From the NCBI GenBank assembly GCA_900088475.1, contig FLMG01002184.1, positions 1-64,000 of the forward strand: a DNA stretch of 64,000 bases. The letters run 5' to 3'. The notes below the pieces were generated by a model, which was given only the letters and a program-made list of their open reading frames with translations, was not told where the DNA came from and searched no databases. Position numbers and translations under genes: made by a program. Source of the DNA: Hyphochytrium catenoides. Its lineage: Eukaryota; Protista; Hyphochytriomycota. Positions 2,800 through 60,646 of the stretch are shown piece by piece (position 1 is the stretch's first letter; each line of letters starts with the position of its first letter).

Positions 2800-4959
2800 A
2801 ATCAAGCCGGTTGCTGCGTATCTATTGGTCTCTAGTCTTTGATGGCAAGGGCAACAAAATGTAGGTGTGCGCCTACGAGTTGAGCCGCGGCACCAAGCAA
2901 GAGGGAAGTAGCCTATTGACGAGGCAGAAGCTGGTGTGGGCACAGCTCCAGAGCAGGCGGCAGAGCAGGCGGTCTTTGTCGTGAGAGGGTAGTGGTGCGT
3001 TGCTAGCCACGCTAGAGTCTCTTCTATTTCCTTATGTCTCCTTCCTCCTGATCCCAGTATCCTGCTGGTACTATGCTTTCATGCTTCTGCTGCTTCGTCC
3101 TAGGCCTTTGTTGGCTCCTTCTTGTTGGCGCTTAACCAGACTTTGGGCTTGGGTAGGTGCAGCATCTGGGATCTCTTCTTTTGCTCTTTCTCATGTGCTA
3201 TAACTACTATGTAGTTCTATCAACAGTTCTCTTCTTTCTCTTTCTTCCTTGTTGTCTCTCCTCCCTTCATTCCCTCTTGTTCCGCTCTCTGATTTCTTGA
3301 TGTGTATGTACAAAAAGTACAGAAACCATATTGTGCGCCCTTTTATACATCAGGGGTTCGGATAATGTAGTCCGCAAGATGTGCGCACTGCTTGCAGGCT
3401 ACTGAAAAGTGGTATGATGATACTGTACTGAGTTTCTATGTTGATTGTTTGTAATAACGATCAATCACCCATCATTTGTGCAGTAGCGTCCATTGATGAC
3501 GGATGCAGCAGCACAGGTACACAGGAGGAAGGAGAAAGAGAAGAAGAAGAGGTAGAAGACAACCGAGTAGTAATCTATTTGTAGGATCCTCCTGACGTGA
3601 CACTCAGTTGATGATGAAATGTCCTTCATCGTTGATGAGAAAGCAGGAAGAAGAACACTTCTATTCGCTGCCGGTAAGTGGTGAGGAATGTTGATGAGGA
3701 GGGCCATAAGGAGTGTTTCTAGTGACTCATTTGATGCTTCTATATCTATGAACGAATCATCAAACAACGTCGTCGTCGAGTGTCTACTTCCCAAGCATTT
3801 TGCCTCCAGTTCAATACCAACATTCACTCGTCGAGTCTCCAGAAGAATGAAGCGAACGGGATGGTACCAACATGATGGCCGACGAGGACTAATGATAGTA
3901 GTCAAAGGAAACTTTCCTTATTGCACCTTCGACATCCAAAGTCAAATCTCTTCTGGTGTCTATGTGCTCCTAGACCACAAGCTTTCCTCCTTCTCTTCCT
4001 CCACTCCTGAACTAGGAAAGAGAACTGTCCGTGATAGCGTTGACGGCGAACGGGCAAAAGTACTATGTGTGCTTTGCCTTTATTATGTACCTCTCAAGAC
4101 CTCCTTCTGCAGGTCATCATCATCATCATCTCAGCATATCATCATCATCATCAAACAAGGAAGTTGTATGAGTACTTCACGAATATAAGTGGCAAAACTA
4201 TTTTCGATAGGGTCTAAGGGGAGCTTCTTCGGGTAGTCTTACCCAGCTTCGCACTATCTATGTGCTACACGTATCTGAGAAGGCGGGGTATGTTCTGGCT
4301 AGGAGTTATTTAGCCCTAGAAAGGTAGGGCATCACATGGAGTGAAGAGTTCAATGTGTGAGGCGGCTCTGTTGCTGTTGAGTGTTGAGGTCCCTTTCTTC
4401 CAGCATCTTCCCCATGCTCCAAGGTGTCAGGGAAAGCTTCGGGGCAGATTGAGCTTCTTCAGGCACAAAGGTCCTCGACCTTTTTGTAGGAAGTGCTTCC
4501 TCTTGCTCGTCGTGTTTGTCCTCCCTGTCGATCTTTCCCTAATCCATCATTCCGCTGGCGCTCCCCCGCCTTGGTCGCGCGCCACCTCGAACCTCATGCA
4601 CAAAGAGGTCGAGCTAGGAAGCCTGTAATTGAGTGCGACTCCTCCGCCGTTTATAGTTGACAATGGGTGGGTAGAGTCTCAGTCAACAGGTGCTGAGAAA
4701 AGGTGGCCGTTGTTGCCACAGTGGTGTACCAGTTGAGCGCAGTAAGGAAGACTTTCAGGAAACGCTGGACAGCTCTGTCCCGCCTAATGGAACTGGCACC
4801 GCTCAGAGCCACCCGAGCCCTTTCTTAGCTGCAAGGTCCACCCCTATATCGGATGCATATCAACTCTGCAGTTTGATCATGAATTGAGCGGAAAGACTAA
4901 GCTGAGGAACGGGTGAAGTGACGCTGGACCTAGCCAGCTGCCGTAGTCAAACAAGGAAC

Positions 4960-7261
4960 ATGAATGCTACCGCTCTCGGGACTAAGAAGTCGCCCTCCTC
5001 CTTTCGGAGTGCCGTGGCTCCAAAAATTCCTTCTTTTAGACTGAATGAGATCCGAACTGAGCTCCAGGCCATTGGGGCTGGCGTTGGAGGTTGGAATCGC
5101 GAAAGGTCCATCTCTGGAATGATTGAGGAGGAGTTCCTGCATCAGTTTGATACAGTTAGGGTAGGTTAATGACGGTGCCAATGACGAAGGCATAAGCTCT
5201 TACAATGAGGCAACAGACTTATGATGTAGGCATAAGCACGGAACAGCTCTTTCGATACTCAGAGCTTTCCGGGGGAAGGAAGACAAAGATCATTTGCGCT
5301 ATCGGACCGCCTTGCCGAAGCCAAGAAATGCTCGGTGAGACATCAAAGATTGCTCTTCCTCAAGTACCATATTCTGAGGATCTGTCTCCCTTGTCACAGG
5401 AAAGCTACTTGACGCCGGAATGAATGTCGCGAGGCTGAACTTCTCACATGGGACACACGAGTACCATCAGGAAAGCTTGGATAATCTCCGCGCTGCTCAA
5501 GCCACGAGGCGAGGCATCCATTGTGCCGTCTTATTGGACACAAAGGGTCCGGAACTACGGACAGGACTTTTAAAGAATCACGGACCGATCCATCTGGTGG
5601 TGAGTGCTATCTTAACGACCCACCAGTCGCTGAGGATTGTTTTAATGACATCTTTTTCATGCAGAGCGGACAAGAGCTAGAGATCACAACTGACTACTCC
5701 CTGGAAGGCGATAACAGCCGGATTACCTGCAACTACCCAGACCTGCCGACAGCCGTGAAGCCAGGCAGTGCAATCCTGTGTGCAGACGGCAGTTTGACGT
5801 TGACAGTGCTCCGATGCCTTGAAAACTCTGTTATCACGCGTGTAGAGAACTCCATCACACTGGAAGAGACCAAAAACTTCTATTTGCCAGGTAACAGAGT
5901 GGTGGATTGACAGAAAGAAGTCTACCTTACCCCCTCGCTTACGATCCTCTAGGAGCCAGGGTAAACTTGCCTCCAGTGACTGAGAAGGATATCGACGATA
6001 TTGTAAACTTCGCAATTCCAAATAGGGTAGATCTCATCTCCACCTCATTCGTTCGCAATGCGGAACACATAAGGTCCGTTTGATAGCTCTTGATGATGAC
6101 CTCAAGCCGGCATTCACGAACTTTTTTCCGGCTTACTTCTGATGGATGAAGAGCGATAAGAAATGTGCTTGGCCCAGAGGGCCGAGATATTCGGGTCAAT
6201 GCCAAGATTGAAAGCCTGGTGTGTACCTTGCGGCCTGCACTTAACAACCAAGTCCATCGACCCTAACTGCTAAGGTTTCACGCTGCAGGAGGCGTTAGAA
6301 AATTTTGATGAGATTTTGAAGGAAGCTGACGGCATTCATGTTAGTAGAGGAGACTTGGGCATGGAGCTACCTCCACAGAAGGTACCCCATATCGTCAGAC
6401 GTCGTTTGCCTCTTTCCTTACGCTCTACGCACTTCGCAGGTCTTTCTCGCCCAGAAGATGATCATTCGCAAAGCAAACATAGCAGGAAAACCTGTGGTCA
6501 CCTCTACCCAGATGCTCGAGTCTATGATAAACAATCCGGTACCCACCTTTGCAGAAGCCTCAGATGTGGCGAATGCAGTTATAGATGGTACAGATGCTGT
6601 AATGCTCTCAGGGGAAACTGCCAAAGGCAAGCACCCAGTTGAGAGCGTGTTAGTCATGTCACGAATCTTGAAGGAGGCCGAGGGTACGTCGCCAGGAGTC
6701 ATTTCCTCCCCACCCCAGCTAGCCCGACAAGCCTACTAACTCTCTATGCCTTAGCTATATTGAACTACGACGAGATGTTTATTGACATCAGAGACTCTAC
6801 GCCAAAACCTGTTGACAAAGGAGAGGCTGTGGCTTCTTCGGCAGTAGCAACTGCTATTGACACTAAGGCTCGCGTCATTGTCGTGCTATCGGAGACAGGC
6901 TATACAGCCCGATGCGTCGCCAAGTACCGTCCCAAGGTTCCTATCGTGGCGGTTACGACATCAGCTAGGGCTGCGAGACAAATGGCTGGCTTGTCAAGGT
7001 ACGCTTAGCGAATTCAGTTACTTTTAGTCGCTCACTGCTGACCTGTAGTTCTTGCTTTCGTCTGTTGGCAGAGGCGTTCATTGCCTAGTCGTGGAGTCTA
7101 TGATAGGTTCTGATACACTATTAAATCGCGGCATACTCTTTGCCCTCAACCAGAGTTGGATACTTCCAGGCGATATGGCAGTCGGTGTCCACGGCTATAA
7201 GGAGGGGCTAGCTGGCACGGCCAGCATCGTTAAAGTTATTAGAGTCAGCGCAAATTTCTAG
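4960..7261 (+). CDS. PK: Pyruvate kinase, ~10 exons, ~85-aa N-terminal extension
   Basis: [87 protein letters not shown]. Introns 56-78 nt. Start ATG is the first in-frame one and is inferred. Confidence 0.95.
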
Positions 7262-36179: not shown

Positions 36180-37340
36180 TTAGTCCTGCTTCATCATGGA
36201 CTCATAGAAGGCCTTTCCTGCAGCCTTGTGCTGCTTGCGCTCCTTCTTAAGAGCACGTCTCCTAGCAAGTACATCCTCCTTCTTGGCCTTTCTCTGAGCC
36301 TGAGCCTTTACCTCAGCACGGCGAGCAGCCAGCGCGTAAGGGTTGAGCTTGACCATAACACCGAAGTTCTTCAGAGGGTTCTTCTTCTGCACACGGCGGG
36401 TCTTGGAAACCTTGGCTGGGCGCACAACGGACTGAATTTCATCAGAGTTGATAAGACGAGCCAAGTCGGCGTTGTGCATAACGTGGCGAGGCAAGGTGTA
36501 GTCCGCCTTCAGAGCAGCCTTGGCGTTGTAAGTGCCGTAAAGCTCATCCAAGCGGCTGAAGGCGCTCTTGGTCCAGACAACGAAACGTCCAAGGTGGCCA
36601 CCAGGAGCAAGCTGAAGCAGGTTGAGGCGGTCGACGTGGCAGAGCTCTACACCAGGAAGGTTTCTGAAGGCCTTCTCAATGCCGCCTGCCTCACGGTACA
36701 CCACAAGAGGCCCACGGCGCTGGACGTATCTACGGTTACGCATCTTACCCTTACCAGGGCGAAGCTTCTTTGAGGCCCTAGCCTTGTCTACATCAGCAGC
36801 AGCACCGAACTTCTTGAGTACCTCGTAGGCCTGCTTGGTCTTCTGGATGGTCTGAACGCTGTCGTCGAGGACCAGAGGGATCTCAGTGACCTGCTCAATG
36901 CGGTGCCCACGGCCAAGAACAAGCGCAGGAAGAGCGGAAGCTGCCAGGGCAGATGCAACGGCAAATCTGCGCTGGTTCACGTTCACCTTCTTGTGCCACT
37001 TACGCCAGATCTTGGTGGGAGCGAACATACGGCCGCCACGGCACATGTTACCGAAGGCACCCTGTCCGGAGCGCTGGGTACCGCCTCCCTGGACACGAGG
37101 AATACGAGAGACAGCACGACCAGTACCCCATGACTCAGCGGAGGTCTGGTGGCCAGCGATTCTGGAGACAGCATATGGCTGGCGCTTGTTCTTGGCAATG
37201 TTGGTGTGAACGAAGCGCACTACATCTGGACGGATGGGAGCCGTGAAGACAGTTGGTAGAGGCACCTGAGAGACAACACGGCCCTCATTGGAGGCGTCGT
37301 AGACAGACACGACGGGTCTGGCAGCAGCGACAGCGGCCAT
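36180..37340 (-). CDS. RPL4: 60S ribosomal protein L4 (uL4), intronless
   Basis: [67 protein letters not shown]. The true start is MAAVAAARP at 37340; the ORF-track extension to 37496 lies upstream of it. Confidence 0.98.
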
Positions 37341-37362
37341 TTTTATAGAGAAGAAGAGAGAG
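37341..37362 (-). promoter_or_regulatory. Pyrimidine tract and AAAA immediately upstream of the RPL4 ATG (TOP-like leader or 5'-UTR element)
   Basis: Minus strand reads ...tctctctcttcttctctataaaaATG; function is inferred only. Confidence 0.3.
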
Positions 37363-38254
37363 ATGTTAAGAGGATTGCGATGATGCGAAATGAAGATGCA
37401 GCGGATGAAGCTTCTTCGTAGGTCTCGAGCTGCAGATTTCAGCGGCCGTGGTCCGCCGATGTTTATGTTGGCGCGCGGTGGAGTGGCTCTGAACAAGGGA
37501 GGACTCTGCGTATTACTACACTAGTCCCCAGCATCAAAATGTTAGTTTAACTGGTTCTGTAGGCGGTATTATTTTCATGGAGGTATCCCATACTACTGAC
37601 CAATGGTCAAGAAGACGGTGGGTGGGTTGAGGTTCGCGGTAGACTCATAACAGGGGTGGGTATGCTGCAAAGACCTCCCGGTCACCCATGGCCCTAGAAT
37701 CAGCCGTCTTCAGATCAGTAAGTGATAATCAACGTAAAGCATTCCATTGGTCTGATCCTGCTCCTATGAACAGACATTGCACAGGGTTGAGGGTCGAGCT
37801 CGTTGGTCAAGGACGAAGAGAGAGATTTCCAGATAGAGTGCAGAACTCTTGACCAACCAGCCAACCAGCTATGCTGGTGCCGGGTAGTGAGCATCAGGGG
37901 TAGGGAATGCGTAGCGGGATACTTGTAGGTTACGGTCACTGCCTGATGCATGTGCAAACCTTGGTGGGGATGAGTGCCTTCGTGCTCGTGTCGAGTCGAA
38001 GAGTGAAGCTAGGATGAGCTACATTGGGTCTGAGGTTATTTGCAGTGAGGAAGACGGCTTTCTAGATGAATAGGTTTCCAGGCAAGCAGGTGGTGCAAGC
38101 TGTTGCTCAGGGAGGGGAGTGTAGATGAGTACTTGAAGAAAACTGCTTAAGGCCAGTGCAAATTGGTCAGTTTGAGTTCGTGCTCATGCGATCATGTGTC
38201 TGACTACACAGGGTAATCTCGCAACAGAATACAAGTGTTATTTGATCGCACAGA

Positions 38255-48452: not shown

Positions 48453-50039
48453 ATGGTGCAGGCGGTAGTGGACTGGTTCACGCCCAAGAGGCAGATGATC
48501 ATCTTTGTGATCATCAACATCTTCAACTACATTGATCGCGGTATTGTGCCAGGTGCCCCTGAATACTTCACAGAATTTATCGAAGAAGTGAAGCAGACGG
48601 AGACAACCGGTGTGCTCTTTGGCCTTTTGACCATGGTCTTCATTATTGGCTATATGCTCGCCACATTGGTCTTCGGATACCTCTTGCGTTTCGTGCCCCC
48701 GATGAGAGTGATTGGCTACGGTCTGATTGTCCACGTAGCCTCACTCCTCATGTCTGGCTCAGCGTACTACGCCAACTCCTATGAGGTGCTGCTTATTGCC
48801 AGGTGTCTCAGTGGGGCGGGAGAGGCCGCTTTCTGCATTATCACTCCCGCAATCATCGACGACCAAGCTCCACCAGAAAAGAAGGGGACATGGCTAGCAA
48901 TCCTCTTTGCGGCTATCCCTGTTGGTACTGCTCTCGGGTATGGGTATGGCAGCTTCGTATCAAAAGCTCTTGGCTGGCAGTGGGCTTTCTTCCTCGAGTC
49001 TCTTCCTTATTATCCTATGATTGTCTTCTGCTTCATGCTTGACGAACTCAAGCTGAATATGAGTGCAAAGGCCGCAGTTGGGGCCATTGGTGGTAAAAGT
49101 GGGGTGGATGATGAGCCACTTAGCGTTCGGAACTCTGGTTTGGGTTGCCGCGCGCATTTGGTTTCTTTAGATGCAGCACTTCCACGAGATTCCACCGAAG
49201 TAGTGGCCAAGGCCGTTGAGCTCGCTGATAAGTCTCAAGATGCACCTCAGCCATCCCTTTTGGTGGAGAGTAAGATCATCCTTACTACCCCGCTCTTTAT
49301 GATCTCCGCCTTTGGTCAATCAGCGACAACAGCCTTCGTTGCAGGACTCTCGGTCTGGGCTCCGCTCATTGTCAGACAGCTCCAGTTCACTGATTCTCAG
49401 GAAACTGCTTCACTCATGGTGGGAGGTATCGCCCTAATTGGCGGTCTTGTGGGAACCCCTCTTGGTGGATTCCTTGTGGACAAGTATGGAGGTAATGACA
49501 ACGCGACAAAGCTGAAATCTTCTGTGGCGCAGCTTGCCGTGATTGCGGTGGTGAGCACCGTCTTCTTCCTCATCCTGCCCTGGGTCAGCAGCATTATTCT
49601 TTTCTTCATCCTCTCGGTGATTGGCCTCACTGTTATCATGTGCAACATCTCTCCGTGCACTGTTGCCTACTTGTATACAGTTCCAGCAAGAAGTAGAGGC
49701 TTTGCCATGGGCATTGCCACCATGATCATTCACTTGTTCGGTGATGTACCAGCGCCCGTAATCATCGGTGGAATCAAAGACCTTCTTGCTCCTCCTTCCA
49801 CTATCATTGGCGAAGAAGGGAAGGATAAGATCTACAGTGAAGAGGGCATTAGGGGCCTCAGATGGACTCTATTTATCCTTTCTTGCTGGATGTTCGTTGC
49901 AGTTTTCTTCTGGGTGCTGGGGTACTTTGTATTCATGAAGCAACTTCGCCAGCATGAAGCACAGCAGAATCAGTCAGAGTTGGTCGTGGATAAGGAAGGA
50001 CACACCCCCGACGCTAAGTATACTGAGAACACGGTCTAA
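48453..50039 (+). CDS. Spinster-family MFS transporter, intronless, 528 aa
   Basis: INIFNYIDRG, ARCLSGAGEA, IIDDQAP, AIPVGTALGY, WQWAF, IHLFGDVPAPVIIG; ~12 hydrophobic segments; acidic-dileucine-like SELVV near the C-terminus. Confidence 0.9.
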   Translation: MVQAVVDWFTPKRQMIIFVIINIFNYIDRGIVPGAPEYFTEFIEEVKQTETTGVLFGLLTMVFIIGYMLATLVFGYLLRFVPPMRVIGYGLIVHVASLLMSGSAYYANSYEVLLIARCLSGAGEAAFCIITPAIIDDQAPPEKKGTWLAILFAAIPVGTALGYGYGSFVSKALGWQWAFFLESLPYYPMIVFCFMLDELKLNMSAKAAVGAIGGKSGVDDEPLSVRNSGLGCRAHLVSLDAALPRDSTEVVAKAVELADKSQDAPQPSLLVESKIILTTPLFMISAFGQSATTAFVAGLSVWAPLIVRQLQFTDSQETASLMVGGIALIGGLVGTPLGGFLVDKYGGNDNATKLKSSVAQLAVIAVVSTVFFLILPWVSSIILFFILSVIGLTVIMCNISPCTVAYLYTVPARSRGFAMGIATMIIHLFGDVPAPVIIGGIKDLLAPPSTIIGEEGKDKIYSEEGIRGLRWTLFILSCWMFVAVFFWVLGYFVFMKQLRQHEAQQNQSELVVDKEGHTPDAKYTENTV

Positions 50040-50649: not shown

Positions 50650-53600
50650 CATGATGGCGCCGTAGGAAGCCCCGCAACCAGCAACAGCCCCGTAGAAGAA
50701 GTTCCTACCGGAGGCAAGCAACAGACAGACAGCCTCATTACCACCTGTCAGTCAGGAGAAGAGTCAGAGATCGCTAAGGTCAGGTCAGTGTAGATAGAGC
50801 CTCCTGACTGAACATTCTCTAACAGGAGCAAGAGATTTAGTTAGAGTTGTCTACGAGTGCAGCCCAAGTTGCGCAGTGTTTCCATGTGGAGGACCAACAT
50901 TTTGGCGTAGATCTATTCCTTCGTCAGTGAAGCGCCTTTCTGGTCGGTCTTGCAGGCCCACAGACCGTTCTTCCGAGAAATGGACCTACTGAGCTATGAT
51001 CCTGCGGAGGTGTTCAGTCTCGCAGTAGCAGGATGCCTGGTCCTCTCGGAGTTTCATGGCTTTACAGGCACGATGGGGCCATTAACCCTCGTGCTCAGAC
51101 TCCTAAGTGACACTGTTTTTGCCCTTGAGTCCTGGGCTTCAAGAGCTCTATCTCTACCGTCCAACTGTCGCGATGAACTCTTCCAAATCCTTTGCATATT
51201 GGTATGTATCCTCTATAAATCTGCCAGTCCTCTGCCCCTGCAGTCCTTTGTTCCCTGGTGGTTCTGGTGTCTCTCTATGGTAGGACACATCGTAGGCTCG
51301 TCTTGTCGAGAGCTCTCTTGCTGTCACATGCTATGCCTCATATCTCCATGCTTAACCTATTTGTCTTTGGCATCCAGTACTGACCACGTCATCATGCTCG
51401 CTCAGTATAATCTCATAGGCGTTCCCTTCCGCGCCTCGACGGGTAGTGGCTTACGTCTTTCGTTCTTGCTATTGGACTGCGTGGTAGACATCATCTTTTT
51501 TCGCAGCATCTTTAATTCAAAGGTTCGTCTGTCGACTTAGTCTTTCAGGAAGAGACAATCCGAACTCAATCATCTGCACGCCAATCTCTATAATCACAGA
51601 TCCTGACCAAGCTTTGCCCGCCAGCTTTCTTCAACAATGTAACGACTATCATCTTCACCGACACCGCCAAGGAGAAAGAGAGCATTACTCTCAACTTGCT
51701 GGCCGTCCTTGCCGCTGCTATACCTGTTGATAGCCTCTTCGGCATCTACAGAGTCTTTGAGCTCTCCCTGACAGGTAGGAGCACCCTTCACCTTCACGCA
51801 ACAGAGAGGGACTAACTATAAAACAGGACAAATTTTTTCTATGACAAGCCTCGGTCTGTTATCCGAGTTCTACCTAACGAGGGGTTTCCACAAGTGAGGA
51901 CCGAACGTTATGTCTGTCAGTTGCAAGGTTCTCAATGGTTACGCCTCTACCTGTAGGATGTTAGCGATTGTTCTGCTGCCAGACACCTTCTCTTCGTTGC
52001 AATCTAAGGTGGCATCTCTGACGACGCTTCGGTTGAACGAGATGATGGTTTACCTCTTTCTCCTTTACCATTTTACCGGCTGCGCCTGGCTGGCTCTTGG
52101 CCAGGTAGAGAAGGCTCTTGTTACTATCCCCTCGTCACTTGTATCTGATCTGCCAAGTTGTTCAACTTACCGCGAGATAGATAGAGGGCTTTGGAGCCAA
52201 CTCTTTTGTACCGCCTGAACCATTAAGAGCAGCCACACCCTGGACCAAATACTTCTACGCTCTTCACTGGGCCATCTTCAAAGTGAGTCCCCCTAGCTTA
52301 GGATCAATGACTACGCGTGAAGCTTGACATTTGGCTCATCGCTCTTCCTTGGCCTCCCTTAGGTTGAAGAGTCTGAGCCAGCTACCCAGCTGGAGAGCAT
52401 TTTTAATTCTATCACATATGCGCTGATGGGTCTGGCCAACGTCACACTGGTTGGACAGGTACGTCCAACCTCGCGGCTCGTAGGGTCCAAAAGTACTGAT
52501 TTGACAAATTCCAGGTCGCTGCTTACATTGCAAACAGAGACAGCACGATGCAGGACTTTATGGAGAGAGTGGAGAGGGCAGAGGAATACATGGAGATTAT
52601 TCAGCTACCACCCGATTTGAGGGAGAGAGTTCAGCGTTACTATCGGTACCTATGGAGCAAAGACAAAGGCAAGCAAAGAGATGATGAGAGTGTATTGAAT
52701 GACCTCAACATGCACCTCAGACAGGAAATAAGGTGGGAACTTTGCTTCTCCATAGCTTGCTCTTGTTACCTCCAGCTGACCCAAGACCGTAATGAAAGGT
52801 ACTTTCTAAATGGAAGTATCCTAAGACAAGTCTCCATGTTCGCAAACTGTCCGGAAGGCTTTATTCGGGAGCTTGTGAATCTCTTAGAGCATCAGACCTT
52901 TGGTCCTGACGAGTTCATTGTCCGGAAAGGAGAGATCGGTGTGTTCATCGGTAGATGTCATTTTTACCCCTGCTTAGGTTTGACTGCTTTTGGCTTGGTC
53001 GGTTTCAGGTCGCGAGCTATTTCTGGTACGCAGCGGTCGAGTGCGAGTCGTAGATGAGAACGGCGATAGTCTCAATGAGATGGGTGCCGGGCAGTTCTTT
53101 GGGGAGCTCGGTTTGATATTTAGCATATCAAGACAAGCGTCCGTCCAAGCTGTGACATTCACTGATATTTCGGTCCTTTACTATGAGAAGGTCAGACACA
53201 ACGCGTATCGATTGGCGTCCATCGAGGTTTTTTCTTCCCTTTGTATGTCTTACTGAGTACTCTCTTCCATAGCTTAAGTGCTGCCTGGACGACTATCCCG
53301 CGGTATTCGACGACATTGTGGAAAGTACGAAGCAGCGGCTATTGGATCATCAGTACTTCGGACTTACTTCGGATGTAGCCAACCTTGAGGTAACCTAACC
53401 CTAAGGGGTAATGTGCTGCCCTGCATTCATTAGTAGCCATCCTTCTGCCTGCGTCGCCCTCGTTTCCTGCAGACTCGACTTCGGCGTCATGGTTCATGCA
53501 TAGAAGAGGCTGGATCCAATGACGATGCTAAGTCAGAAGCACCAGTGCAGTCAATGCCGCTTGAGCTGGCTTCTCCCCCTTCTCCTCCCAACAAAGTAGC

Positions 53601-55440
53601 TAAGCCAACACTCTTCACCTTTGTGCGCGACCGTCTCCTTCACCAGCCGCCGTCAATAAGCCTGAGTGAACCAGTGCTCCCAGCTCACACAGCAGCCACT
53701 CCAAAGAAAAATGAGAGTTTCAACGAGGGACCAGAAGATGAGTAGGTGATCCTAGGTTCAACACTTATCGGACTGTACCGTAGCAAGACGTTCACGCTAC
53801 TAACTCTTTTGCAGTTTTATGACGCGTGGGCGTTCGACCACCTTGGAGTCAATCACTTCGCTCCTCTCGGTCCCGAGCAAGGGTCCTAGCCGCAGTTCTC
53901 ACATCTCGGCACACTCGGGCTCCAGCACAAGCAAAAGAGGTAGAGAAAAGACGTCAGCTCCTAAAGGATGTTGCTAATAGCTGCAACTGTCTACTCTGTG
54001 ACAGGCAGCCTAAAGAGCTACAACGATTTAGAGCTAGCAGCTGCCCTGCAAGAGGCACCACCATTGAAGGAAACCGTTAGCAGAGCGATCAGGTGTGGCC
54101 GGTCAACAGTGTTCTCGCATCTATGTGGTCTCTATTTATACTCTTCCAAGGCTGCGGTCGTCTCAACTTGTCCTACTTCTTGCTTCTTCTCTGGTATCGT
54201 ATACTTGACGCCTTCCCAACATTCTATCCGCCTTGATAGGCTCCGCACTTCCTGTTCTGAGGGACTCAACGAGCCCTTTCCGGACGATGGTAGCCGCTTG
54301 TCAGTTGATGACATGCTCAAAATTCCTCAACGTTCGAGCTCTAGACGCGATTTGCGCCGTTCATGCTCGACACACAGAGCGACTCGAGGACAAAGTCTAG
54401 AGCGTCATTCTTCCCAACAAAGCGTGACCTCCATCCAGTCCATAGGCAGGTGTGGAGCTGTACAGGAGCAGTGAGAGAGACCTTTGCTCCCGAGATCTAG
54501 ATATTTATCCTCATAACGCTTGACATCTTTCTGAACTTGGCAATTCAAACCTCTCTTATGTTCCATCAAAGCTCAGTACTGCTGAATAGAGATCTTACTC
54601 TTGTGCTATCCGTAACCCAGATCTGGCGGATCTCCTGCCGGAAGTCCAATCAGCAGGCCATGCAGCCTGAACACGAAGCGGTCACTCACATTAGAGCAAC
54701 CTGCTCTCGACGCCACATCAACAGGTTCACAGTCAGATCTGTAAGTAGTCAACTTTGAAATGCACATTTGCTACTTCCGGTACTCAGCGTTCTCTCCCTT
54801 GCTAGAGCTGTGGCCTTAGGGCTATCGCCGCCTGTAGATCAGCAACAGCGGAGCTCTATGACTTCAGGAAGTACGCTGCCCCCGACAGGAAGTGCATGGA
54901 ATGTGGAGCCTAGAACAGCCCAACGGGAGGGACACAACCAGGCGGCAGCCGAATCGGCCTCGATGCCGGACTTGATTGTCCCAAAGGTTAAAAAAAGTCG
55001 CCCTTCGTCTCCACTGCTAGGTCTTTCTTCCTCTCCACTGCTAGGTCTTTCTTCCTCTTTTTGAGCATAGTACAGTCTGAACATTAACGCATTGACTCTG
55101 TGGACAGCTCGTTAACGTTTCACAATCGCCATCTAAGGCTGAAACGGCGGATGGAGCACTGAAGGCGTCTCTACTGAAGGTCGGGAAGGAACAAGCCCAG
55201 CGGTATCTAGAAAGCCAACGCCAAGTGATAGAGGCGCTCATGCAACAAGCATTTGAGCAGGGCTTTCTGGCCGGCGTGAAGAGCAGCACACAGTTTCAAA
55301 CTCCTAGTCCTTCTGAAGTTACCCAGCGAAGGTCTGAAAAGATTAATTTATCAGGGATTGAGACTACGTCAGATACGGCTGGCGGAGCTTCTAAAGAAAA
55401 CGGTCTTCAAGCAGCCACGCTTCCACTGCCAAGATCATAG
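50650..55440 (+). CDS. 6TM cation-channel-like protein with C-linker and cyclic-nucleotide-binding domain, long disordered tail; 5' end approximate
   Basis: YNLIGVPFRA..LLLDCVVDIIF (S1-S2), AAIPVD (S3), HFTGCAWLALG (S5), LPPDLRERVQRYYRYLW (C-linker), FANCPEGFIREL..FGPDEFIVRKGEIG..FFGELGLIFSISRQASVQA (CNBD). Confidence 0.85.
55008..55058. repeat. 24-bp tandem duplication inside a predicted intron of the channel gene
   Basis: tctccactgctaggtctttcttcc at 55008-55031 and 55032-55055. Confidence 0.9.
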
Positions 55441-57954: not shown

Positions 57955-59982
57955 TTACACTACGGCATTAGTCTCACTGTTAGGTCCCCGAAAAACAGGC
58001 TGAAGGTCGGGATCGCCAGTGGCTCGGAAGAGAGCTCCGCCTTCTTGCCAGCTTCGGAGCAGAGCCAACTGCCCTATAAGCTCCGGGGCCGGGTTAGCGT
58101 GGAAAGGAAAAATTCTACGGAATGGCACCGAAGCAGGAGGTATGGCCAGATATCTCCGTGCAACGTAACAAAGAGATGGGTAATCAATGGTCCGCTTCTG
58201 CCACCAGTCAATGCAGCTTGAGTCAGCGGTGTAGCCCTCGGTGGGCAAGCCTAGGTACTGGGCTAGCTCTGGCCCATAAGGCAGACTTGGCGTCGATGCC
58301 TGAGGTTGCTTGAAACTCCTTGGTTCCTCGTCCTCACTCTCATCCTCGTCCGAAGAAAAAAAGTCGGTTCCCTTAGTAGGTGGAGGGGGACCAGAAGGCG
58401 GTGGCTGAGGCATGCGACGCTGAAGAAGCTCTTTTTTTAGGGCCTCTTGCACCTCCTTTTTCTTATCTTGGCTCACAAACTGTAGGTTTTTGAAGCGAGC
58501 ATCAAGCAATGATGCTATCAGTGCTGGCATGTCCGGTTCCTTACAATTTTCAAGCCGGGCCAGCAGGGTCTCCGCTAGCTTCAGAGCCAAACCGGACTTT
58601 CTCTTTGTAACGCTCTTCACCTTTTTACCGAGCTTGACAAGGGTAGGCACCACCAGGGAAAAGCTACCATTGTTGGGGTCTTGAAGCATGTTTTGTGCTG
58701 ACGAAACCAAAGCAAAAAGTTCTGCCATGTCGGTCAACGCCTCCACCTCTGAAGGGCTCGGAAGAGATGCTAGCACCCGGCTGGCCTCTAGTCCGCTTTC
58801 CCCCTCGCTCTCCTTATGCAACTTTGAAGTTAGCACCGGAAGGGCGTCCTTTAGCTGGCAAAACTGACTAAGGATAGCTTGGATGGAGAGCCAATCGTAG
58901 GGATAGGCAGAAGCTAATCTGTTGACAAGGTCGGGCAGCAGTCTATTAATGATGCCATCGCCGCGGATCAGGGTGAGGACGCTTCGAAGTTTATCCACCA
59001 GTTGTGCAGCCTCTTCCATCTCGTTGACCGTTGCTTTCAGCGTGTCTTCCAGCCATCTGGCGGTGCATGCAATATGGGAAAGGTGAAATCTATCCAGCTT
59101 CAAGTCGTACTGTTTGTCAGTTATCAGCATATCAACCTTACCCTGAAGTCCCCAACGTTCAATAGCGATTCCCACCTCGAAGGATAAGTCATCAGGGTTT
59201 TGTGAAGATGCTATGCCAGCCACATGGAGGATGTAAGATCGTGACCGCAAGTGCTCATTTAGCCAATGACCACCAATAGCAACGTAGTGCTCGAGTTCGC
59301 CTAAGGACCACACGTCCAGCGACAACTGCACTTGGGGCTGGTACCTCAGCTCCTGGACAATGGCCCTCTTGCATCTTTCGTAAGCTTCATAAATGGTGGA
59401 GCTTACAACAGAGGAGGAGGGAAGAGAAAGTCGAGGATTAATGGACCCCATCCAGTTCTGGAAGACGAAGCTGTCAGTAAGAGAGACAGGCAGCGCCTCC
59501 AGCACGAGTAGTTCAGCGAGTTCATCAACATAGAGCTTGTTGGTCCGTTCATCAAACTTCTTAACCGTGCGCACGTCGACTCGCGGACGAATCTGATGCC
59601 TTGACTTAAGGTGGCGGATAAAGTTTGATGTACCGCTATGAACGGTCATCGTGTGATCACACAATGTGCATCGAGCCTTCTTCCCGTCACTGCCATCCAC
59701 CAGCTGAAAGTATTCCCAGGTGAAGCTCTTTGGCTGAGCACCAGAAGATAGGCTTCGCTTAGGGGTGCCTCCTGGTCCCTTTCCACTTTGTTGCTCGCCA
59801 TCACTAGTTGTACCATCGTAGACATCCTGCGGTGCACCACCGTAAGAAGTCCTTCTTGCAGGCTCATTCCGACGCTTTCTCTTCTTCGCCCTTTCACTTT
59901 CGCTTGCGCCGGTGGAGGAGACAGTGGGAGGCTGGACTTCCTGGCCCCAGATGCTTCGGCCCTGCACCACTCTTTGACTCAT
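57955..59982 (-). CDS. hAT transposase-derived BED zinc-finger protein (ZBED-like), probably domesticated
   Basis: BED finger WEYF..ARCTLC..GTSNFIRHLKSRH, SLDVW, ITD, ASLLDARFK, C-terminal dimerisation domain DWW..YPSLCYVARRYLAIP. Single intact ORF; first ATG at 59982. Confidence 0.85.
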   Translation of the reverse strand: MSQRVVQGRSIWGQEVQPPTVSSTGASESERAKKRKRRNEPARRTSYGGAPQDVYDGTTSDGEQQSGKGPGGTPKRSLSSGAQPKSFTWEYFQLVDGSDGKKARCTLCDHTMTVHSGTSNFIRHLKSRHQIRPRVDVRTVKKFDERTNKLYVDELAELLVLEALPVSLTDSFVFQNWMGSINPRLSLPSSSVVSSTIYEAYERCKRAIVQELRYQPQVQLSLDVWSLGELEHYVAIGGHWLNEHLRSRSYILHVAGIASSQNPDDLSFEVGIAIERWGLQGKVDMLITDKQYDLKLDRFHLSHIACTARWLEDTLKATVNEMEEAAQLVDKLRSVLTLIRGDGIINRLLPDLVNRLASAYPYDWLSIQAILSQFCQLKDALPVLTSKLHKESEGESGLEASRVLASLPSPSEVEALTDMAELFALVSSAQNMLQDPNNGSFSLVVPTLVKLGKKVKSVTKRKSGLALKLAETLLARLENCKEPDMPALIASLLDARFKNLQFVSQDKKKEVQEALKKELLQRRMPQPPPSGPPPPTKGTDFFSSDEDESEDEEPRSFKQPQASTPSLPYGPELAQYLGLPTEGYTADSSCIDWWQKRTIDYPSLCYVARRYLAIPPASVPFRRIFPFHANPAPELIGQLALLRSWQEGGALFRATGDPDLQPVFRGPNSETNAVV

Positions 59983-60646
59983 CTTGCCCTCTTGCAACGG
60001 GCACAATGTAGCCTCCCTGCAGTCTTTAGAACTGAAGCGCCCCAAGCTGCGAGAATGTGCTCTAGAACTAAACTAGTTGAAGCTTCCCTTAGCTCTTCTG
60101 ATGAGTTTTTGAAATTTGTGCTCTACTCGTAGGAGGTCAGTCTGTTCTGAGATCTCAAGTATTTGAAGTCTCGAGTGCTGAAGCTTCAGAGACTGTTGGT
60201 GCCCGCTATCGGAGGCGGGGATGCCTCAAAGGTTGAGGAAGCTCTCAACGGCTGGTCTCGGGTTCCCTGGGCCTGCCCACCCCCGAGGAAGCTATGGTAA
60301 TTATGCAGTCTTAGGACAGGACGGCACCCACCCACCCACCCAACACAGGTGACTCGGCTTGCAAAGGCTCGAAAGCAGAAAATCCAAGTTCCATTCATCA
60401 GACGATTCGGAATATGTTAGAATACTGCATGCGAATTCTGGATTCGGCAAAAAGAGTTGTGCCTGTTCAGTATAGTACGGACATCGCACGAACATCCCGA
60501 CGTCGCACAACGTACATGACGTAGTAACAGTGGTTTTCTATGAAGATTATATCAGGCTAAGTATTACCTTAGCGTTTTTCTCTGGGACGTTACAGAGCAT
60601 CATCGCCCAGCTCGATGAGCCATCATCGGAGGGCAAGAGCTTCGTC

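Follow-up and report, generated by a model that had tools for sequence, protein, structure and literature searches.

A short acidic pore loop at the position of the K+ filter in a clade of cyclic-nucleotide-binding-domain channels that includes a gene of Hyphochytrium catenoides

How is the pore built in a channel with a cyclic-nucleotide-binding domain (CNBD) when the strand that should form its K+ filter is missing from the gene? The question is raised by a multi-exon gene with short introns on contig FLMG01002184.1 of Hyphochytrium catenoides, of which positions 1 to 64,000 were analyzed (hereafter the window). The gene lies on the plus strand and starts at 50980, as read from frames and splice sites. 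A first-pass annotation, made from the letters alone, had described it as a CNBD channel in which a short acidic loop replaces the filter. We derived its exon boundaries by hand from a six-frame view and the splice sites; every exon is open, and the splice sites are canonical GT-AG.

The splice junction and the missing filter

Exon 6 (52181 to 52282) encodes the turret EGFGANSF and the pore helix TKYFYALHWAIFK, as seen from the frames, from tblastn to a related Logan locus (L003) and from our main alignment (A1). The start given in the first-pass annotation, 52180, lies one base ahead of the exon. Exon 6 is followed by an intron of 80 nucleotides in phase 0 (52283 to 52362, GTGAGT...CCCTTAG, with a pyrimidine-rich 3' end), located exactly where the filter is expected. 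Exon 7 (52363 to 52458) starts with VEESEPATQLESIF and, by frames, alignment and residue spacing (36, see below), carries the acidic pair and turn VEESEPAT and then the sixth transmembrane segment (S6), which ends in VTLVGQ. Across the junction 52282/52363 the DNA is predicted to read ...TTCAAA joined to GTTGAAGAG, and the protein ...HWAIFK followed directly by VEESEPAT.... Neither T-x-G-[YFL]-G nor T-I-G-E is present in exons 6 and 7. We weighed, and rejected, a missed micro-exon and a different junction. The intron contains no GYG in any frame, its in-frame read-through meets a stop after 14 codons, and a local script that joined the DNA of both exons at all in-frame stop-free donor/acceptor pairs found nine alternatives, of which none gives a GYG-like loop. 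Among the nine enumerated, only 52283/52362 combines a consensus donor with a pyrimidine tract. The original statements that the pore splices over this intron without a TxGYG signature, and that no in-frame GYG can be recovered from it, both held against frames, splice sites and the intronless loops of the same length in relatives.

The regions around the pore leave little doubt about the family. Searches were made with single exons or the unaltered read-through translation of the window, plus database proteins. The translation of 52500 to 53054 matches HCN4, HCN2, HCN1, CNGA1-3 and SthK in the C-linker (phmmer against the PDB, E values of 1e-13 to 1e-10). Exon 8 (52515 to 52732) is the C-linker proper, with HCN4/HCN2/HCN1 and CNGA1-3 at ca. 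1e-13, and exon 9 (52799 to 52938, from frames, phmmer against the PDB and tblastn to L003) contains its end and the first CNBD strands, finishing in GEIG. Exon 10 (53009 to 53190) encodes the CNBD beta-roll with the phosphate-binding cassette FGELGLIFSISRQAS and matches Pfam cNMP_binding (PF00027; 6.5e-11, 42.5 bits against a cut-off of 27.5). An intact C-linker, as first proposed, agrees with the HCN, CNGA and SthK matches. The claim of an intact cassette also stands in that FGE...SRQAS is present, with the qualification that a Gln follows the phosphate-binding Arg at a position where L003, another related locus (L002) and a marine group of relatives have Thr (RTA). This Gln may shift ligand affinity or preference, in H. 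catenoides only. Exons 5 to 7 align to S5, pore and S6 of relatives, and S1 to S4 were assigned by hand. The CNBD is the sole Pfam match; Ion_trans gave none on single exons, which are short, and exon 7 alone gave no phmmer match in the PDB. Judged by its C-linker, CNBD and six-transmembrane (6TM) core, the window protein is a subunit of the HCN/CNG-type CNBD-channel superfamily. It is nevertheless placed by its pore residues outside the K+-selective, HCN and animal CNG groups, because the filters that define them were looked for and are absent.

Relatives with the same loop

An exhaustive phmmer search with the 185-residue stretch 52500 to 53054 against 1.84 billion representatives gave 883 matches, among which there is no close orthologue of the window gene (the best is a fragment with 48% identity). 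Projecting the C-linker match back onto the matches allowed us to read their pore regions. Most filters are TxGYG and some are of other types, while three fragments (P0109, P0028 and P0068) have a loop of the window's length. P0109 (...YWSFARCDDAEPATMLE...VTIVGQ) is encoded without interruption by 510 nucleotides on a contig of 841 bp in an NCBI assembly; P0028 (...HFALHKIDDSNPTNSNE...IIMGQ) comes from one unbroken gene of 343 residues on a 67.7-kb contig from ENA (locus L001), and P0068 has a loop of the P0028 type. The Logan locus L003, with a guanine-plus-cytosine (GC) content of 66% and reached from P0023, reads ...YWALVRSDDALPSTRAE...VTLVGQ in one open frame (1362 to 1583; called protein P0177). 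Word searches added P0151, P0152-P0155, P0176 and the full-length P0173 (706 residues), from marine TARA, ENA, JGI and Logan data with 29 to 37% GC. All of these added proteins that cover the pore (P0151, P0154, P0155, P0173 and P0176) contain HKIDDSNPTN[AS]NE, and the loop is invariant in at least seven distinct sequences of this group with 57 to 86% identity to P0151. These word searches (with P0028 and profiles A3 and A4) widened the marine group only and yielded no protein of H. catenoides and no oomycete orthologue. Metagenome contigs searched with alignment A6 and the C-linker exon gave pattern matches and no confirmed relative, and a feature search of the Atlas returned only generic CNBD-channel clusters. 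Incidentally, a 724-residue protein on a Logan contig (P0174) that scores high against the clade profile has four or five tandem cyclic-nucleotide-binding domains and no channel part.

The short loop is plain intronless coding sequence in three other lineages (P0109, L003 and the marine group of P0173), and the window junction reproduces its length exactly. Because these lineages encode the loop without an intron at that point, the junction 52282/52363 is indirectly supported. Introns elsewhere in the gene are found at matching positions, after VGQ in phase 0 (window and L003) and after GE[IT]G in phase 1 (window, L003 and L002). Within the marine group, L001 and L004 have a nonsynonymous divergence (dN) of 0.16 with saturated synonymous divergence (dS), their alignment is best conserved in the block that surrounds the loop, and L004-L007 are near-identical. 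A dN/dS near 1 had been named at the outset as a sign of a pseudogene; in these marine relatives the substitution pattern indicates purifying selection instead. Adjoining the marine channel gene, L004 carries at 4070-6832 (minus strand) a gene for a CFAP58-type cilia/flagella-associated coiled-coil protein. This neighbor marks the marine carrier as a flagellate, and the channel might conceivably have a flagellar role.

To compare loop lengths, we measured, in residues, the spacing between the aromatic position of the pore helix and the glycine of S6 for 59 CNBD-channel relatives and for the window protein. The spacing is 41 in 32 of them (GYG channels), 43 in seven, 42 in one, 40 in another seven (mostly TIGE types) and 39 in six (mostly T-M-T-G-Y-N-N types). 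A value of 36 appears only in the six short-loop rows and in the window protein, against 39 to 43 in the 53 other relatives. The short loop is five residues shorter than that of GYG channels and four shorter than that of TIGE channels, in line with the shortening of about five residues noticed originally. In the MAFFT alignment A1, the five-column gap of the short-loop rows falls directly over T-V-G-Y-G of the GYG channels, and the anchor Pro and Glu that flank the filter stay aligned as two nearly invariant columns. The loop itself follows the motif [KR]-x-[DE][DE]-[SA]-x-P-[AST]-[TN]-x-x-E in the window protein, P0109, L003 and the P0173 group. The acidic pair, EE in the window and DD elsewhere, is preceded by a conserved Lys or Arg, and S6 ends in Gly-Gln throughout the clade, compared with Gly-Asn or Gly-His in most other relatives. 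The window protein, P0109, L003 and the P0173 group share the three features together (spacing 36, loop motif and the Gly-Gln ending).

A maximum likelihood tree (IQ-TREE, LG+C20+F+G4) was built from 135 columns of the C-linker and early CNBD, with the pore excluded. Its 61 rows comprise the read-through translation of the window, two separate pieces of L003, the short-loop proteins and 52 other matches. All seven short-loop rows fall, together with the pore-less fragments P0006 and P0075, in one clade of nine rows with an ultrafast bootstrap of 100 and a Shimodaira-Hasegawa-like approximate likelihood ratio test (SH-aLRT) value of 96, both to be read as rough since the bootstrap had not fully converged. 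Inside it, the window, L003, P0006 and P0109 form a group with similarly rough support of 97/83. Read from alignment and tree together, the short-acidic-loop proteins are a real and conserved subfamily with the K+ filter cleanly excised. By the same comparisons, the short loop is no isolated oddity and no artefact of splicing; it characterizes a conserved and well-supported clade. The acidic loop first seen in the window gene is kept across this clade, the exact EESE being the form of the window gene, of which the search found no close orthologue. Many protist-like CNBD channels have other non-GYG filters of near-normal length, such as T-M-T-G-Y-N-N-T-x-P (P0062, P0063, P0094, P0116), T-R-V-G-G-S-P (P0060, P0070) and T-G-x-G-D/P (P0054, P0061, P0067). 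In the tree, the four sequences of the first type group together, and P0060/P0070 are a well-supported pair.

AlphaFold2 models of two homologues show how the loop might fold. P0151 (430 residues, alignment A2) was modelled with a mean predicted local distance difference test score (pLDDT) of 84.9, a predicted template modelling score (pTM) of 0.73 and pore blocks at 93 to 97; P0109 (alignment A7) reached a pLDDT of 88.8, with pore blocks at 94 to 98. Both models agree in that the pore helix, AITKFVHCFHFAL plus KIDD in P0151 and PARQ...FARCDD in P0109, runs through the acidic pair and ends on it. Five non-helical residues follow (SNPTN and AEPAT, respectively), after which S6 starts and continues unbroken into the C-linker. 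The P0151 model has the full 6TM fold, and its nearest structures by Foldseek are CNGA1/B1, CNGA3/B3, CNGA2, SthK and TAX-4 (E values of 1e-16 to 1e-12).

Ion passage without a filter strand

What, then, could such a pore do? The first-pass annotation proposed either a novel selectivity or a non-conducting modulatory subunit or cyclic nucleotide receptor. On balance, we lean toward a cyclic-nucleotide-gated cation pore that has no filter strand, is not K+ selective and probably favors Ca2+; the short-loop clade probably represents a different way of building the pore. In the clade, the five filter positions are deleted, the pore helix passes directly into two acidic residues, and a five-residue turn ([SA]-x-P-[AST]-[TN]) connects to an S6 that keeps the anchor Pro and Glu. 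Four such subunits would make a cyclic-nucleotide-gated pore without a K+-type carbonyl filter, whose sole extracellular constriction would be a ring of 8 to 12 carboxylates (two to three acidic residues from each subunit) at the C-terminal, negative-dipole ends of the four pore helices. A pore of this kind would select for cations, though not for K+ in the manner of a carbonyl cage, and should bind or pass divalents, above all Ca2+. Animal CNG channels have a single Glu ring, of which the acidic ring would be an exaggerated version; that filter Glu is indispensable both for permeation and for block by Ca2+ (PMC10761061). There is also precedent for conduction through a rebuilt loop, as the NirBac channels of the Kir family, with replaced P-loops, still conduct nonselectively (PMC4607889). 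In the hand alignment, the S4 of the window protein retains only R, H and K, at its end, where relatives have three to four Arg or Lys. A segment so nearly devoid of charge suggests gating by ligand alone rather than by voltage. A plausible role is signalling from cyclic nucleotides to Ca2+ in a flagellate stage. A bolder version, in which the double or triple carboxylate ring itself sets selectivity and makes a Ca2+-selective or strongly Ca2+-preferring channel, through which flagellate stramenopile-like protists would turn cAMP or cGMP directly into Ca2+ entry, is possible and held here only tentatively.

Several observations weigh against a Ca2+-favoring conducting pore. S6 is unusually polar, with Lys or Glu in its middle in two lineages and Asn, Glu or Ala at the position of the CNGA1 Phe gate, which could mean a different or a non-conducting pore. 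The Gln in the window cassette, at the site of Thr in relatives, may give a different ligand affinity. Finally, the models are of monomers, and where the acidic ring sits relative to the four-fold axis is taken from the family fold.

The same polar S6, with charged residues in some members, counts in favor of the best of the other explanations, which is rather doubtful and deserves a hearing. Here the protein would be a silent or modulatory subunit that co-assembles with GYG-type CNBD paralogues and alters selectivity or gating, or would serve purely as a membrane-bound cyclic nucleotide sensor. The canonical filter is wholly absent and the window S4 is degenerate, as might be expected of such a subunit. 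CNGB and KvS subunits co-assemble with paralogues, and CNGB subunits, which have no filter Glu, modify Ca2+ block (PMC10761061). However, a dead loop would be expected to drift, and this one has a fixed length and keeps [KR]-x-acid-acid...P...E across lineages with 29% to 67% GC. Conservation is good in the pore helix, S6, C-linker and CNBD alike, and a tetramer mixing loops that differ by five residues looks sterically awkward. The conserved acidic pair favors a pore that interacts with ions, without proving conduction.

It seems improbable that the clade passes species other than metal cations (protons or anions) through a wide, short pore, or uses a non-canonical path. The missing carbonyl filter and the polar or charged S6, including Lys in two lineages, would fit such a pore. 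Against this, the mouth in the models is strongly acidic and lies where the helix dipoles have their negative ends, which should disfavor anions, and we know of no precedent for proton or anion conduction in the CNBD family. Least credible of all is that the gene model of the window copy was spliced wrongly or that the copy is a pseudogene in decay, its loop stemming from a wrong junction; the deletion does coincide exactly with an intron, and predicted proteins of H. catenoides were not found in the searched protein collections, but relatives have the identical spacing with no intron there, all exons are open with canonical borders, three intron positions are shared by the window gene with L003 and L002, no alternative junction gives a filter, and the pseudogene reading is further weakened because the clade is under purifying selection where this could be measured (the marine group).

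Gene context and known systems

The rest of the gene model supplies the parts expected of one channel subunit. Exon 1 (50980 to 51201), an open frame from the ATG with a donor GTATGT at 51202, carries the N-terminus and the start of S1. Exon 2 (51406 to 51522; acceptor CAG at 51403-51405 in frame, donor GTTCGT) has the remainder of S1 and S2 by hand alignment to HCN-type sequences. By frames and splice sites, exon 3 (51600 to 51774) encodes the S2-S3 linker and S3 with an IPVD motif, and exon 4 (51827 to 51893) the start of the charge-poor S4. Exon 5 (51957 to 52104) continues with the end of S4, the S4-S5 linker and S5 (...YHFTGCAWLALGQ), supported by tblastn to L003 (7e-07) and alignment A1; the motif H-x-x-G-C is present in S5 by hand alignment. 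Downstream of the beta-roll, exon 11 (53273 to 53389) spans the C-helix region of the CNBD (frame and splice sites, with a weak match to L003), and exon 12 (53473 to 53745) a low-complexity tail. We left the 3' end of the model two-way, since the frame either ends at TAG 53743-53745 or reads on from a donor GTAGGT at 53742 into more Ser/Thr-rich exons to ca. 54471.

A tandem channel with two repeats, as described in oomycetes (PMC7576140), was rejected. There is no second 6TM-CNBD unit downstream, and directly upstream (48453-50039, plus strand) a single 528-residue open frame encodes an MFS/OATP-like transporter (Pfam MFS_1 2.6e-37, OATP 1.5e-25); therefore, the window gene codes for a single-repeat subunit. 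Elsewhere, the window has an open frame of 696 residues that encodes a BED zinc finger and a hAT dimerisation region (57955-60045, minus strand) and a ribosomal protein L4 gene in one long open frame, with Ribosomal_L4 and a C-terminal domain (36183-37496, minus strand).

To our knowledge, the filter is the strand that follows the pore helix in every characterised branch of the 6TM and two-transmembrane (2TM) tetrameric cation channels. CNG channels shorten this strand by just one or two residues. The short-loop clade has no filter strand, even though it retains the pore helix, the anchor Pro and Glu, S6, the C-linker and the CNBD, and our literature search found no description of a CNBD channel with an excised filter. 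If these proteins conduct, they would reveal the minimum that a P-loop channel needs for ion selection and would offer a compact natural scaffold for cyclic-nucleotide-gated Ca2+ entry; if they do not, they would be a natural case of a channel that has become nothing but a ligand sensor. A survey of eukaryotic CNBD channels from 2020 found deviations from TVGY/FG to be rare and, as the feature of a clade, restricted to animal CNG channels, and its table gives GYG-type filters for oomycetes (PMC7576140). The clade corrects this picture of near-invariant filters outside animals, and the matches recovered here hold several more non-GYG types.

Among known systems, the animal CNG channels (CNGA1-4, CNGB1/3 and TAX-4) are the best structural match of the homologue model. 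They share with the short-loop proteins the layout of S5, pore helix, S6, C-linker and CNBD and a non-GYG pore, in which an acidic residue governs Ca2+ permeation and block (PMC10761061). However, each of their subunits has a filter, T-I-G-E-T-P, that exceeds the short loop by four residues and contains a single Glu, whereas short-loop subunits have no filter strand and carry two to three acidic residues each, and the animal-type sequences (P0073, P0098, P0081 and P0145) form a separate clade in the tree. HCN channels give the best C-linker match (ca. 1e-13) and an S6 that aligns without gaps, but they have C-I-G-Y-G and a long Arg/Lys-rich S4, neither of which is found in the window protein. 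The K+-type CNBD channels of protists and bacteria (TVGYG; SthK) have in common the superfamily, the domain order and the anchor Pro and Glu around the filter, whereas the short-loop clade lacks all five filter positions. NirBac is comparable as a K+-channel scaffold with a non-canonical P-loop that forms a working nonselective cation channel (PMC4607889), although on a prokaryotic 2TM Kir scaffold, with unrelated loop sequences and not by a clean excision of five residues. Finally, the non-GYG protist CNBD channels (T-M-T-G-Y-N-N-T-x-P and T-R-V-G-G-S-P) also combine a CNG-like scaffold with a divergent filter, but their loops are only zero to two residues shorter than those of GYG channels (spacing 39 to 41), keep a Gly-containing strand and fall outside the short-loop clade.

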